A DNA stretch of 63,524 nt, the filler included, from Octopus bimaculoides (Eukaryota): assembly GCF_001194135.2 (NCBI RefSeq). It is 5 parts of 4 records of this genome, joined end to end, with 100 filler letters (N's around TTAATTAATTAA, not from the genome) between each part and the next. Parts side by side here need not be neighbours in the genome. Positions count along the whole stretch, not along the records: positions 56,671 to 60,782 come from NW_026300677.1; 4 more parts are not named here. The stretch is one strand, 5' to 3'. The notes below the pieces were generated by a model. The model made no database searches, was not told the origin of the DNA, and saw only the letters and a program-made list of their open reading frames with translations. The position numbers were made by a program, and so were the translations under genes. Positions 56,671 through 60,919 of this stretch are shown here, piece by piece; position 1 is the stretch's first letter, and the number at the start of each line of letters is the position of its first letter.

Positions 56671-56672
56671 GT

Positions 56673-58052
56673 AAATGTGGACAATATCAAGATCTAATGT
56701 TGCTATCTGAGGGAGAATCTTTTGCTTATACATATACTGACATTGAATATTATGGAAAGATGGCCCGTCCTTATAACCAGCCCACCTTTTACTATTCATC
56801 TGACGTGCAAAATATATTTAACCGGCGATTTGATTACACCTTAGTATTGGATGCCGATACAGGGGTGCCGGATGGAACGGTAGAAAAACTTCTCGGAATA
56901 GCTGCAGCAAACCCAGAGAAAGGGATCATCCAACCATCTATAAAACTAAGTCGCGATGTAAACGATACCCTGTACATGAGACTGGAAGCGATGAGACAAA
57001 TGATCTACGAGCCAATGACAAATGCTGTCACAGCATTACTCGGTCAGTGTGGTTTCTTCGGAAAAGGGCTCATCAAAAACCGTATATACATCGATAACAT
57101 AATCGGGAGTAGAGACAATCTAATCGAACGTGTTCCTATTGATGTTCTTAGTCACGACACATTTGAAGCAGCTTTACTCAAACCCTACTATGCCGGCTCA
57201 GTGTTCTTACTGGAAGCTCCCAGTTTTAATTACATTACATGGAACATTCGAGAACGACGTTGGAATCGAGGTGAGGTTATATTATCCATGTACTTCTGGA
57301 AAAATACGATTGGTATAATTTTTAGGAGCTTACAGAAAGTTTTTCAAAGGGATAAGTTTAATAAAACAGTTCTGAGGACGGAAAGTAAACTTGATTTCGT
57401 TACGGCTTATATTGCCCATTCGGCATTAAGACAGATGTTAATGAAACCTTTCTTACTTATATTTATTTGTTTACACGTTGGTATAGAACTCAGGTTTTCA
57501 ATTGCCCCAATCGCTGTCATTATGTTCTTGGTTCTTGTCTTCCCTAAAATTGCTACGTGTACCAGATCAAACGTTAAATATGTTATAATTGAAACTTTGA
57601 CATCCATCTTACAATTTACGCCTGAAGCCATTGTTGGTTGCGTACGCATCTTTCGTGCAATCCAAGCGAATATTTCCGCCAATTGTAAATGGATTCCACA
57701 AAGATCTATCGAAGAAGAATTTAAAAACTGCAATCCTTTCCTCTCCAGTCTGAAACACTTATGGATGTACTCTTTATTGGCCGCTGTTGTTGCTCCGGTG
57801 GTAGTGATTTTTGTTCCAAGTTCAAGCATTATTCTCTGTATGTTGATAACTTTATTTCTTCTTCCGCTGTTTACTGGGCTAACATCACTAACTATGGACT
57901 TGAAATCCTCCCGAAGTGTAATTTCAACTTCAAAACAGCACCTACAAGTTAGTGTTCTTGGAAGTACTAGCAGCTTGACTTTAGGTTTAAAAACGACGAC
58001 TATCAATTCTACGGGTGCTTACCTAAACCAGGCATATGATAATATGTGGTAA
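56673..58052 (+). CDS. 5'-truncated membrane glycosyltransferase (GT2/GT84-like) resembling bacterial beta-1,2-glucan synthases OpgH/MdoH and Cgs/NdvB
   Basis: The frame is open from the gap edge (KCGQYQDLM...) to TAA at 58050-58052, >=459 aa with no intron. Motifs: YTLVLDADT (DxD at 56850), IIQP, GFFGKGLI, LSHDTFEAALL (57150), RERRWNRGE, ETLTSIL..P, WIPQR, then several hydrophobic helices. The ATG at 56697 is probably not the true start. Confidence 0.88.
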   Translation, partial: KCGQYQDLMLLSEGESFAYTYTDIEYYGKMARPYNQPTFYYSSDVQNIFNRRFDYTLVLDADTGVPDGTVEKLLGIAAANPEKGIIQPSIKLSRDVNDTLYMRLEAMRQMIYEPMTNAVTALLGQCGFFGKGLIKNRIYIDNIIGSRDNLIERVPIDVLSHDTFEAALLKPYYAGSVFLLEAPSFNYITWNIRERRWNRGEVILSMYFWKNTIGIIFRSLQKVFQRDKFNKTVLRTESKLDFVTAYIAHSALRQMLMKPFLLIFICLHVGIELRFSIAPIAVIMFLVLVFPKIATCTRSNVKYVIIETLTSILQFTPEAIVGCVRIFRAIQANISANCKWIPQRSIEEEFKNCNPFLSSLKHLWMYSLLAAVVAPVVVIFVPSSSIILCMLITLFLLPLFTGLTSLTMDLKSSRSVISTSKQHLQVSVLGSTSSLTLGLKTTTINSTGAYLNQAYDNMW

Positions 58053-58142
58053 ATCTCATCCTATTTCTATTTTTATTTGAAACATCAGTCACGATATTTA
58101 ATCGAATCAATCATATTATTTATTGAAACTGTCATAATTTGG

Positions 58143-58148
58143 AATAAA
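58143..58148 (+). promoter_or_regulatory. Candidate polyadenylation signal of the glycosyltransferase gene
   Basis: AATAAA about 90 nt after the stop codon. The context is AT-rich, so chance occurrence is possible. Confidence 0.35.
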
Positions 58149-58386
58149 TTTCTCTGAAAATGAAGCGTTTATTTTGACTTTTCCGTACACCAAATAGCAG
58201 TGACTAAAAATTGTTTGTTTTAATATATATTTCAAGAAAAGATTATTTCTCGTTATTGCTTCATCGCCATACAATATTTGCATGTGAAATTAACTGGTTA
58301 GTATACATATTGTTTCATGTATTTGTAACGGCAGCTTGTTAACAATTATATATAGCTTTAGAAGACGACCAAAAAGAAAACAAGAA

Positions 58387-58590
58387 GGCTGGCAGAAACG
58401 TTAGCATGCCAGGCGAAATGCTTTGCGGTATTTCGTCTGTCTTTACGTTCTGAGTTCAAATTCCGTCGAGGTCGACTTTGCCTTCCATCCTTCCAGGGGT
58501 CTATAAACCAAGTACCAGTTGCATACTGGGTCGATCTAATCGACTGGTCCCCTCCCCCAAAATTTCGAGCCTTGTGCCTAGAGTAGAAAA
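58387..58590 (+). mobile_element. SINE about 335 bp downstream of the glycosyltransferase stop, on the same gap-free contig
   Basis: Same family as 59677-59890 and as the copies inside the PNKD introns. Confidence 0.85.
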
Positions 58591-59676
58591 GAATATTTAT
58601 ACAAGTCCTAATAATATCTAATTTAATACAATAAGAGTTTTTAAACATCGAACGGGTATGAGAGTCCACCCGTGTAAAATGGAAATCAAAGGATCCACGG
58701 GTAAAAATGGGAACCCTTGGTTTAAAGCTTCGTCTTGTCACGGTTACTTTCATTTTCATGATACACAATTTATCACATGCAAATTGCTTAGCTTCCAAAT
58801 CTTGTTTTCTGATTGGGTAAAAGTAATCAACCTTTAAATTTCTGTAATATTTTCCTAAAAATTTTTCTGAATAAATGAATCGCAGATGCAGATTCTCATA
58901 AAAAAATGTACAGCAATTTTCACTTAATTTTAGATTTTGAAAATCTGTAACAACAGAAAAGATCTCCTTTTTATAGTCATCTCTTTTATTTTCTCGGAAT
59001 CGAACCACGAAATACTTGGGTTCAAACGAATTTCTCCACCCCACGACCAGATATAATTTTGTTTTCTTGAACTGTACAACAGGTAAGGTTGTTTACCAGG
59101 TTTCCCTGGCCAAGATCATAACTTGCAGACTTCTTTACAATTTGCCCAGAATACTTCATCTCCAAACAAATACAATAACGCAAATAAAAAGAAGAGAAAA
59201 AAAAAACACTGTTTAATTTTCACAGTTTCACTTTTTATTCTTCCTCATTTAAATTTGTATCAAAATAAAAAAACAAAGCAAAACAAGAATATATAAAATA
59301 TATGTAAATACTTGTGAAAATTTATCAACATGTGTGAATAATTGTATAATAATTTATGAAAGTTTATGGAAAACATTGTATAATAATTTATGAAAACATG
59401 AAAATTTGGAATATGAATGAATATGTGTAAAGATCTATGATTATTTATAAAAATAATTTATGAAAATTTATTTTGAATTTTGTAATTAATGAAGTGGAAG
59501 AAACGATAGGTCAGTTTTCTTTACATTATAGGGTCAATTCGTACCAAATAGCTTAACGACTAAACTGTATTTTTTTTTTTTACTCGCCAAACAGCGATGT
59601 GAAGAAGCCAGTCGTCTGCTGCTATAACCATTACTACGAAAACCCATGGATACTGCCTGCAGTATCATTCTGTGGA

Positions 59677-59890
59677 AAGGCGGCGAGCTGACAGAGTGGT
59701 TAGCACGCCGGGCGAAATGCTTAGCGGTATTTTGTCAGTCTTAACGCTCTGAGTTCAAATTCCGCCGAGGTCGACTTTGTCTTTCATCTTTTCAGGGTCG
59801 ATAAATTAAGTACTAGTTGCGTACTGGATCGGTCTAATCGACTGGGCCCCTCCCCCCAAATTTAGGGCCTTGTGCCAAGAGTAGGAAAGA
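59677..59890 (+). mobile_element. Second tRNA-derived SINE family (representative copy)
   Basis: GGCGGCGAGCTG...GAGTTCAAATTCCGCCGAGGTCGACTTTG...CTTTCATC. Other copies lie at ~12840-13000, 15160-15310, 21152-21370, 23885-24030, 44110-44345 and 60160-60360. Confidence 0.85.
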
Positions 59891-60444
59891 ATTTACCTTA
59901 AATAGCAAAGTAATTTATAAACCTTTGAAAGACTGGAAAAGAACCGACCACCCCATGGAGTGAATCATGTAATTAAATAAAAATACACACACGCACACAC
60001 ACAGACACACACACACACACATGCATACATAGGCAGTAGAATAATTTTTCATTGGCTTGAGGGGAAAAATCCCCTGTGATAATCCAAGTACATTGTCCAG
60101 CTGGGTGAAAGAAAATTTTCTGCTAATCGTGTTGCAATGCTAAGACAATCAATGGATTTCGGTTTCAAATTTTGGTATAATGCCAGCAGTTTTGGGGATT
60201 AAATTGGCTTCATTGTTCAACTGGTACTTATTTTATCGATTAAGGAAGAATGAAAAGCAAAGTAAACCGCGGCAATATTTGAACTCAGAACGTAAAGACG
60301 GACGTAATACCGCTAAGCATTTCACCCGGCGTGCTAACGATTCTGCCAACTTGCTGCCTTAGGAACCGCAAAGATATTAACCACACATGTAACAATACTA
60401 GAACTGACATTCTATAACAACCAGCATTAGAAAGACGATAATAA

Positions 60445-60625
60445 TGCCAGAGTGTATGGTCATAACATCAACATATGTCATAGCAACCATATTATCACAG
60501 AAAATGTTAATGTTAAACTACCTGCGTCATAACATCAATATATACCAAAGCAACTATATTAGCAACAACATTTTTATTCTGGAGTATATACCATAACATC
60601 AACACATATTATAGCAACCACATAT
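60445..60625. repeat. Degenerate ~65-bp tandem repeat, 3 units
   Basis: CATAACATCAA...AGCAAC recurs at 60461, 60528 and 60592. Confidence 0.65.
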
Positions 60626-60919
60626 ATAGAGACATTACAACAGCATCTGATTCTTCAAGTGCTTCAATTCTGTACATACACATATATTTACCCAAATGTT
60701 GAATTTATCAATGGTTTCTCTCATTGTTTTGATAAAGACATTTTCTATCAGTAATAAAATTGTTTGCAGTTTTGACGACACGNNNNNNNNNNNNNNNNNN
60801 NNNNNNNNNNNNNNNNNNNNNNNNNNTTAATTAATTAANNNNNNNNNNNNNNNNNNNNNNNNNNNNNNNNNNNNNNNNNNNNTATATATATATATATATA
60901 TATAGATATAGATAGATAA

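Follow-up and report, generated by a model that had tools for sequence, protein, structure and literature searches.

A membrane-embedded glycosyltransferase gene of Octopus bimaculoides, distantly related to OpgH and Cgs, has relatives in other animals, dinoflagellates and giant viruses

Beta-1,2-glucans are rare and mainly bacterial, with roles in osmoprotection, symbiosis and infection (PMC11842490). Could an octopus nevertheless carry a gene for their synthesis? This question was raised by a window of 63,524 nucleotides (filler included; five parts of four records of the Octopus bimaculoides assembly GCF_001194135.2, joined end to end), in which an open frame had been interpreted from the sequence alone as a cephalopod beta-1,2-glucan synthase of the OpgH/Cgs type, possibly acquired horizontally. 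Our analysis covered window positions 56671–60782 (NW_026300677.1). The sequence comparisons identify the gene as functional, nuclear and intronless, with its 3′ two thirds in the window, and as part of a separate family rather than as an orthologue of OpgH or Cgs. We lean, if only slightly, towards an active OpgH/Cgs-like glucan synthase, for which beta-1,2 would be the likely linkage. The original prediction was right about the kind of enzyme, but it drew the taxon too narrowly and was too specific about family and product.

The frame is closed by a TAA stop at 58050–58052 after 459 sense codons on the plus strand (by translation), and it reaches the left edge of the piece without a stop, so that the gene is 5′-truncated by the contig end. 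With the base composition of the piece, a stop is expected about every 14 codons, and the probability of 459 consecutive open codons is ~5e-15. The first ATG, at 56697, is internal, as it lies inside the conserved DLMLLSEG. The GT-A glycosyltransferase domain is cut about halfway: its first half and the membrane helices before it, some 210 codons, lie past the contig edge and are missing. Adding 210 to the numbering of the window fragment gives that of its orthologue P0002 from Argonauta (D60 = D270). As originally described, LDADT, SHD and RERRW occur in a frame of at least 459 amino acids and are followed by membrane helices (here at ~57396–57884). The parts of the gene and protein are as follows.

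56673–58052, plus strand: 3′ portion of the intronless gene, 459 codons and the stop codon, translating to the equivalent of Argonauta residues 211–669.
56673–56693, plus strand: KCGQYQD, counterpart of RKSGNIDD in OpgH, nearly invariant in the family and aligned with OpgH and bacterial relatives.
56847–56861, plus strand: LDADT (the DxD motif), invariant in 46 sequences; fragment D60/D62 are Argonauta D270/D272 and align with OpgH D346/D348 and Cgs D624.
56925–56939, plus strand: IIQPS, with invariant Q and P, equivalent to GIIQ in OpgH and LLQP in Cgs.
57054–57068, plus strand: FFGKG, with invariant G and K, equivalent to TGKGL in Cgs.
57150–57179, plus strand: SHDTFEAALL, in place of TED in cellulose synthase; fragment D162 aligns with the catalytic base D739 of Cgs, and the motif with OpgH SHDFVEAAL; in 46 sequences S, H, T and E never vary and D hardly does.
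57249–57275, plus strand: RERRWNRGE, the RW motif (RERRW at 57249–57263), at the start of the interface helix, with R, R, W and G invariant; fragment R196-W197 (Argonauta R406-W407) aligns with R773-W774 of Cgs and RDRRW of OpgH.
57231–57356, plus strand: two long predicted interface (amphipathic) helices after the GT-A domain (Argonauta model helices 397–418 and 420–438; predicted local distance difference test, pLDDT, >90).
57396–57884, plus strand: C-terminal membrane domain of about six predicted helices (model helices 452–614, hydropathy peaks), with an approximate ratio of nonsynonymous to synonymous substitution rates (dN/dS) of 0.05 against Argonauta.
57612–57626, 57687–57719 and 57861–57878, plus strand: conserved QFTPE, KWIPQRSIEEE and LPLFTG, all inside the C-terminal membrane domain.
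57888–58049, plus strand: poorly conserved, predicted disordered C-terminal tail (pLDDT <50 at Argonauta 630–669), paralogue-specific, with an approximate dN/dS of 0.36.

The structure model identifies the octopus protein as a membrane-embedded GT-A glycosyltransferase of ~660 residues. The model was made with AlphaFold2 for Argonauta P0002 (669 amino acids, single exon), which matches the window fragment with 82% identity over 100% of the query. It reached a pLDDT of 88.8 and a predicted template modelling score (pTM) of 0.87, and consists of two to three N-terminal membrane helices, the GT-A domain (~83–395), the two interface helices, a second set of about six membrane helices and the disordered tail. 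In a Foldseek comparison with the PDB, three entries of Cgs ranked first (E 5e-16 to 2e-14, TM-score relative to the query, TMq, 0.56–0.59, with the top match at 5e-16 and 0.59). They were followed by BcsA (E 7e-11, TMq 0.45), and then by hyaluronan synthases, plant CesA, Fks1 and chitin synthases. Membrane-embedded synthases made up 49 of the 50 PDB matches listed, and non-processive GT2 enzymes ranked far lower. In fold and motifs, the protein conforms to the general class of processive membrane-embedded GT2-type synthases, and by this likeness it is probably processive itself.

The nearest characterised kin of the family are the beta-1,2-glucan synthases OpgH and Cgs. Every NCBIfam match of the window fragment was to an MdoH/OpgH model (equivalog models NF003955–NF003963), the best with 34.9 bits against a cut-off of 419 and the others with 15–31 bits against cut-offs of 328–1131; full-length orthologues scored 18–49 bits. 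With BLASTP, residues 335–496 of E. coli OpgH aligned at 29% identity over 164 amino acids (E 2e-12), and this alignment brings together VLDAD[ST], ANPxxGIIQ, DTLY, SHDxxEAAL and R[DE]RRW. A profile of 46 family sequences matched E. coli OpgH in hhalign with a probability of 97.4% (E 9.5e-12), over 160 columns and residues 258–420 only. When a profile of the same kind was run against the whole PDB, its sole matches were the Cgs entries 8rf9 and 8rf0 (E 1.8e-5). Here, the invariant D270, D372 and R406-W407 fall on D624, D739 and R773-W774 of Cgs, which are its uridine diphosphate (UDP)-coordinating residue, its catalytic base and its RW motif (PMC10901819). A search of the PDB with a single sequence (phmmer) gave no match at E up to 1.

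The motifs of the bacterial enzymes that were cited in the original prediction fall into place in these alignments, which match VVLDADS, ANPNAGIIQ, SHDFVEAAL and RDRRW of E. coli OpgH, and LDADT, GKGL, SHDLLEG and HRW of Cgs. Likewise, the protein is indeed not a usual animal GT2 enzyme: OpgH/MdoH and Cgs/NdvB are, by both sequence and fold, its only relatives with an annotation or a solved structure. The proposed membership of these two families did not hold, however, with 35 bits against cut-offs of 328–1131 and without their extra domains, the first aspartate of the nucleotide site and the priming tyrosine.

OpgH/MdoH (E. coli b1049, GT2), which with OpgG as its partner makes linear, osmoregulated periplasmic beta-1,2-glucan from UDP-glucose, resembles the octopus family motif for motif in the core, and also in plan, with N-terminal membrane helices, a cytosolic glycosyltransferase domain and C-terminal membrane helices. 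Yet, the octopus protein scores 10–30 times under the curated cut-offs. OpgH has cytoplasmic domains at residues 1–138 and 702–848 around eight membrane helices (PMC3723540). The octopus family lacks both the N-terminal domain (1–138, the FtsZ-binding part) and the C-terminal one (702–848); in the model, orthologues open with a membrane helix at residue 3 and finish at ~669 with the short disordered tail. In addition, OpgH keeps the aspartate of LSD[ST], whereas the octopus family has alanine there and an insert of ~70 residues. This helical insert in the glycosyltransferase domain (Argonauta 127–196) is found in the animal and many viral proteins, but not in the bacterial relatives. Furthermore, OpgH is bacterial and accompanied by OpgG, while the octopus family is eukaryotic and viral, intronless, and has no OpgG partner at its loci: no OpgG-type gene was found within 10 kb in Octopus, Argonauta, Haliotis and Saccoglossus.

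Cgs/NdvB/ChvB (GT84; PDB 8rf0, 8rf9, 8rfe) is the best fold match and the only sequence match in the PDB, and its D624, D739 and R773-W774 all have invariant counterparts in the octopus family. However, Cgs is a protein of ~2800 amino acids, and its N-terminal domain, its GH189 cyclase and its GH94 phosphorylase are all absent from the octopus family. The orthologues in that family measure 632–686 amino acids and show no Pfam domain past weak GT2 matches. Cgs releases its product to the cytoplasm, from where an ABC (ATP-binding cassette) transporter exports it.

What, then, would be the product? A clue comes from bacteria. In the bacterial clade nearest to the family, the proteins are ‘membrane glycosyltransferases’ of ~625 amino acids, found in metagenomes only (P0231, P0239, P0243, P0245, P0246) and assigned to bacteria by an RHS-repeat neighbour and a GC content of 0.45–0.61. 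They have the same length and collinear architecture as the octopus family, give matches to the family profile and also to the MdoH models, carry WGKKWGAYQDLM at the position of RKCGQYQDLM in the family, and retain the aspartate of LSDT. In sequence as well as architecture, this clade stands between OpgH and the eukaryotic family. A pattern scan of GTDB species genomes found none of these bacterial relatives, and a metagenome scan added just two loci.

Four of the five bacterial loci have a gene for a PF10091 protein directly downstream of the synthase on the same strand (L014 1514–4731, L018 547–3722, L020 2911–6185, L021 420–3607). This protein matches the GH144 endo-beta-1,2-glucanase 5gzh at E 1.6e-34. 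At the fifth locus (L017), the downstream gene was not GH144-like in its first 138 residues. The pairing of a synthase with a GH144 (glycoside hydrolase) homologue parallels the opgG-opgH operon and the GH189/GH94 domains fused to Cgs, and OpgG is itself a GH186 beta-1,2-glucanase (PMC11842490). As an observation in its own right, the bacterial two-gene unit looks like an undescribed beta-1,2-glucan system. Each of the three bacterial branches that surround the animal family thus has a tie to beta-1,2-glucan, which makes this polymer the leading guess, by analogy, for the product of the animal enzyme.

The enzyme might then work as follows. The DxD motif and a metal ion would let the cytosolic GT-A domain bind a UDP-sugar, of which UDP-glucose is the most likely. 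The aspartate of SHD would deprotonate the acceptor hydroxyl, while RxxRW would hold the diphosphate and the acceptor. A beta-linked glucan could be built in this way, with beta-1,2 as the leading candidate, and the growing chain would enter the helix bundle above the active site to be delivered over the membrane to the exterior or a lumen. Alternatively, the product may be released into the cytosol and then exported through a transporter, as the product of Cgs is; this route is considered because of the transporter fusions of dinoflagellates described below.

Several results weigh against an active beta-1,2-glucan synthase. Homology with OpgH and Cgs is confined to ~160 residues of the catalytic core at ~29% identity, so that donor sugar and linkage cannot be read from the sequence. 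Animal and viral proteins have VS[A/V/S]T at the place of LSD[ST], and so lack the first nucleotide-binding aspartate. In the multiple alignment, this place reads YILSDS in OpgH and IYLSDT in the bacterial relatives, VLVSAT in animals, and VLISVT or VLVSAT in giant viruses. We take the replaced aspartate to correspond to D527 of Cgs and D179 of BcsA. The autoglycosylated priming tyrosine of Cgs, Y694, in the IF1-homology loop (PMC10901819), lies inside a three-residue insertion (‘yvf’) without a family column in the hidden Markov model alignment; a tyrosine that neighbours this position in molluscs (IYEP) is unconserved in hemichordates and viruses. The animal and viral loci examined showed no glucan-processing partner close to the synthase gene. 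In O. vulgaris, the annotated spliced product of 410 amino acids would be without the membrane domain. Finally, we know of no report of beta-1,2-glucan from an animal.

Some of these points would also fit an active membrane-embedded GT2-type synthase with another product, such as a glucan of different linkage, another sugar polymer, or a primer for a glycolipid or glycoprotein. We regard this as a real possibility. The low identity with OpgH (29% over 164 residues), the 35 bits against MdoH cut-offs of 328–1131, the replaced aspartate, the ~70-residue insert that is absent from bacterial relatives and the missing processing partner all agree with it, and the ABC and MFS (major facilitator superfamily) fusions of dinoflagellates would be as compatible with a small exported molecule as with a polymer. 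On the other hand, all characterised relatives detectable by sequence (OpgH and Cgs) make beta-1,2-glucan, the nearest bacterial clade is coupled to GH144, and Cgs is a clearly better fold match than cellulose, hyaluronan, chitin and beta-1,3-glucan synthases. We keep a glucan synthase with probable beta-1,2 linkage as the preferred reading.

The DNA itself comes from octopus. Positions 1–1221 of the piece are 95.8% identical to the O. vulgaris chromosome OX597831.1 (84 Mb), where the matching site contains an uninterrupted open reading frame (ORF) of 654 amino acids. By contrast, the last 160 coding bases and the 3′ flank in the window match (94%) the end of a second O. vulgaris gene instead, ~10 kb off on the opposite strand. 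Argonauta has the same convergent pair ~12 kb apart, with P0003 (655 amino acids) and P0002 (669 amino acids). In an alignment of the tails, the C-terminus of the window gene (...YLNQAYDNMW) is of the P0002 type, which makes the window gene the P0002 orthologue. These comparisons place it as one of two convergent paralogues. An ORF of 818 amino acids near the Argonauta gene is not a paralogue.

The paralogues of octopods are arranged tail-to-tail at 10–12 kb, each with a distinct tail (O. vulgaris L001 10001–11965 and 22264–22422; Argonauta L002 and L006), and their bodies are homogenised by gene conversion. The synonymous divergence (dS) between the two Argonauta copies is 0.039 over residues 211–410, against 1.06 and 0.71 to either side. 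Between the window gene and the other O. vulgaris paralogue, dS is only 0.10 up to residue 405 and 2.7 in the tail.

Against Argonauta, dN/dS is 0.028 in the catalytic part, 0.051 in the membrane part and 0.36 in the tail, with the ratios being approximate as dS is near saturation. Hence this comparison among cephalopods, which had been proposed along with the gene, points to strong purifying selection on the window gene. The frames are uninterrupted in every species examined. Absence or decay of the orthologues in other cephalopods, named at the outset as grounds for abandoning the idea, was not found: the frames of O. vulgaris and Argonauta are open. All genes checked have a single exon (Argonauta 2010 and 1965 bp, Haliotis 2055 bp, Saccoglossus 1899 bp). 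Over the 46 sequences, 37 columns are invariant, with all motif residues among them, and the residues of DxD, SHD, RxxRW, GK and QP are unchanged from molluscs to giant viruses. The claim that the gene is intact is thus borne out, apart from the cut by the contig end. The contig carrying P0004, probably from another cephalopod, offered nothing on expression.

It is therefore very unlikely that the gene was transferred horizontally and is now decaying, or that it encodes a derivative without catalytic activity. Such a fate might be suspected from the missing first canonical aspartate of the GT-A nucleotide site, from the fast-evolving tail and from the O. vulgaris annotation, which stops the product at 410 amino acids. 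The open frames and the dN/dS of 0.03–0.05 over the catalytic and membrane parts led us to reject a pseudogene, and the invariant motifs speak against loss of catalysis. Moreover, the replacement of the first aspartate is itself conserved: at S-A/V/S-T (Argonauta 122–124, upstream of the window cut), S122, A123 and T124 are nearly invariant and the other catalytic residues are kept, which indicates that the site was changed, not lost. The deposited O. vulgaris model, P0086 (410 amino acids), follows the long ORF for 407 residues and then splices just past RWNR. Its splice donor GTGAG is present in the window too (57267–57276, CGAG|GTGAGG). Because the ORF downstream of this donor is under strong purifying selection (dN/dS 0.05), the P0086 model is probably wrong, or represents at most a minor isoform.

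A divergent chitin, hyaluronan or cellulose synthase-like GT2 enzyme is still less probable. BcsA, the hyaluronan synthases of Chlorella viruses and vertebrates, and the chitin synthases do share with the octopus family a GT-A domain under a helix bundle, the DxD motif, a catalytic aspartate and xRW on an interface helix, with significant Foldseek matches, and such processive enzymes are also encoded by giant viruses. There are weak Pfam matches of the window fragment as well, with 13.7 bits for PF00535 (Glycos_transf_2) against a threshold of 23.3, and 10.4 bits for PF13632 (Glyco_trans_2_3) against 27. However, no match above threshold occurred in the full-length animal orthologues, the motif is SHD instead of TED, GED or, more generally, (T/G/S)ED, the membrane helices are laid out differently, and TMq is 0.20–0.49 compared to 0.56–0.59 for Cgs. 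Chitin, hyaluronan and cellulose synthases were also absent among the sequence matches. We rejected these enzymes for the SHD motif, the Pfam results and the lower fold similarity.

Least probable of all, and rejected on account of the 95.8% match on the 84-Mb O. vulgaris chromosome and the convergent two-gene layout shared by Argonauta, is contamination of the octopus assembly with microbial, protist or viral DNA, which the short source contig (4112 bases), the lack of introns and the giant viruses and dinoflagellates among the relatives might suggest, but which also conflicts with flanks containing an interspersed repeat that has many copies at the O. vulgaris locus, and with neighbour-joining groups (cephalopods, other molluscs, hemichordates) that broadly follow taxonomy. 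The GC content of the gene (0.39) is close to that of its flanks (0.34–0.36). In several species the homologue sits on assembled records of 13.6–140 Mb, and the Saccoglossus gene is flanked by an intron-bearing GMC oxidoreductase gene and MIS13.

How widespread is this family? The cephalopod-specific slant of the original prediction was too narrow, as full-length orthologues occur in gastropods, bivalves and hemichordates, and also in a nemertean. A word-indexed search returned 145 proteins. Full-length relatives with 53–82% identity were found in cephalopods, gastropods (Haliotis, Patella, Lottia, Batillaria, Nucella), many bivalves, often in multiple copies, and hemichordates (Saccoglossus, Ptychodera, Glandiceps); the nemertean Tubulanus has one homologue with 41% identity. 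Several animal members have been named automatically as ‘glucans biosynthesis glucosyltransferase H-like’. An exhaustive profile search of 1.84 billion cluster representatives yielded 112 at E <= 1e-30, 196 at E <= 1e-10 and 957 at E <= 1e-3. It is a small family, with proteins of ~600–700 amino acids.

Contigs of marine giant viruses carry full-length members with 31–35% identity (L007–L009, L011–L013, L015–L016), next to genes for the major capsid protein of nucleocytoplasmic large DNA viruses (NCLDV), DVNP, PCNA and topoisomerase II. Three IMG/VR loci belong to giant-virus genome bins, and a further locus adjoins IF4E and DUF5764. No neighbour gene was conserved between the giant-virus loci, and no viral partner emerged from them. 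The best fold match in BFVD was a GT2 protein of Yasminevirus, and in the trees AT-rich environmental sequences cluster with the giant-virus genes.

In some dinoflagellates the synthase is fused to transporters. The whole synthase (profile positions 6–621) lies inside an ABCC-like full transporter in the products of two transcripts, P0131 from Gymnodinium smaydae (2241 amino acids) and P0130 from an MMETSP sample (2226 amino acids), and the metagenome protein P0126 (2213 amino acids) has the same layout. In P0131 the synthase is inserted in the first nucleotide-binding domain: Walker A and the Q-loop precede the insertion, while the ABC signature (LSNSDRARISLARA) and Walker B follow. With 800–870 bits, these ABCC-fused synthases are as near to the animal proteins as any non-animal sequence. 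Beyond the dinoflagellate transcripts, other large proteins, P0132 and P0136 among them, have the synthase joined to an MFS transporter or an FH2 domain. Two to four tandem synthase copies occur in P0121 (3301 amino acids, four matched stretches), P0122 and P0123, which may be true tandem fusions or tandem genes run together. Collinear distant relatives come from Abedinium, Effrenium and the ichthyosporean Chromosphaera.

Trees were built by neighbour-joining with simple distances. Three supported groups emerged, made up of cephalopods, of other molluscs and of hemichordates, with broadly taxonomic relationships inside each. A dinoflagellate clade lies among the animal sequences and the viruses lie outside, with only 5–55% bootstrap at the deep nodes. 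A non-animal origin, as suggested in the original prediction, is plausible given the absence of introns, the patchy spread over phyla and the dinoflagellate and giant-virus genes as nearest non-animal kin. The full-length orthologues across gastropods, bivalves, hemichordates and the nemertean imply that any transfer was ancient. Probably, the gene entered animals by an ancient acquisition, or by exchange among marine eukaryotes and viruses, before the mollusc classes split.

There is a precedent for OpgH-type glucosyltransferases in eukaryotes. OpgH homologues of the fungi Verticillium (VDAG_02071), Fusarium oxysporum and Metarhizium were acquired from bacteria by horizontal transfer (PMC3145793). 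The fungal homologue is needed for full virulence, and it groups with Rhizobiales, close to proteobacterial OpgH; other eukaryotic homologues were not found in that study of 2011 (PMC3145793). The octopus family differs from these genes in being far more divergent, with dinoflagellate and giant-virus genes as its nearest relatives. Our literature search found no paper on animal or viral homologues. In the literature found, the family is thus undescribed.

Taken to its full extent, the argument would be that molluscs, hemichordates and nemerteans make beta-1,2-glucan or a related unrecognised glycan, by a synthase lineage that they share with dinoflagellates and giant viruses through ancient horizontal transfer, and without a glucan-processing partner. 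We hold this view only tentatively and with some doubt. Every bacterial beta-1,2-glucan synthase known to us has such a partner.

The fungal OpgH genes of bacterial origin are the only other eukaryotic synthase candidates that we found in the literature (PMC3145793). A conserved family under selection in three animal phyla, dinoflagellates and giant viruses offers a concrete gene for an animal glycan that would be new, possibly in mucus, egg capsule, shell matrix or immunity. A cyclic beta-1,2-glucan has been reported from an alga without explanation, and the family is a candidate for its source too. Gene flow between marine protists, their viruses and animals could be studied cleanly in this family, which also provides a natural variant of the GT-A nucleotide site without the first aspartate. 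If the product is another one, the family would still be a class of animal membrane synthase described in no paper that we found.

The 3′ flank of the octopus gene has some minor features.

58143–58148, plus strand: AATAAA, a candidate polyadenylation signal 91 bases past the stop codon (pattern match only).

An interspersed repeat of ~200 bp is present in three copies, at 58388–58594 (plus strand), 59687–59892 (plus strand) and 60218–60360 (minus strand), with a mutual identity of 80–86%. The same repeat has many copies at the O. vulgaris locus and resembles a short interspersed nuclear element (SINE) in appearance; searches for tRNA and Rfam matches gave none that explains it. The flank also contains a degenerate AT-rich tandem array of ~17 copies of a 10-mer at 59295–59471, and an (AC)18 microsatellite at 59985–60021.

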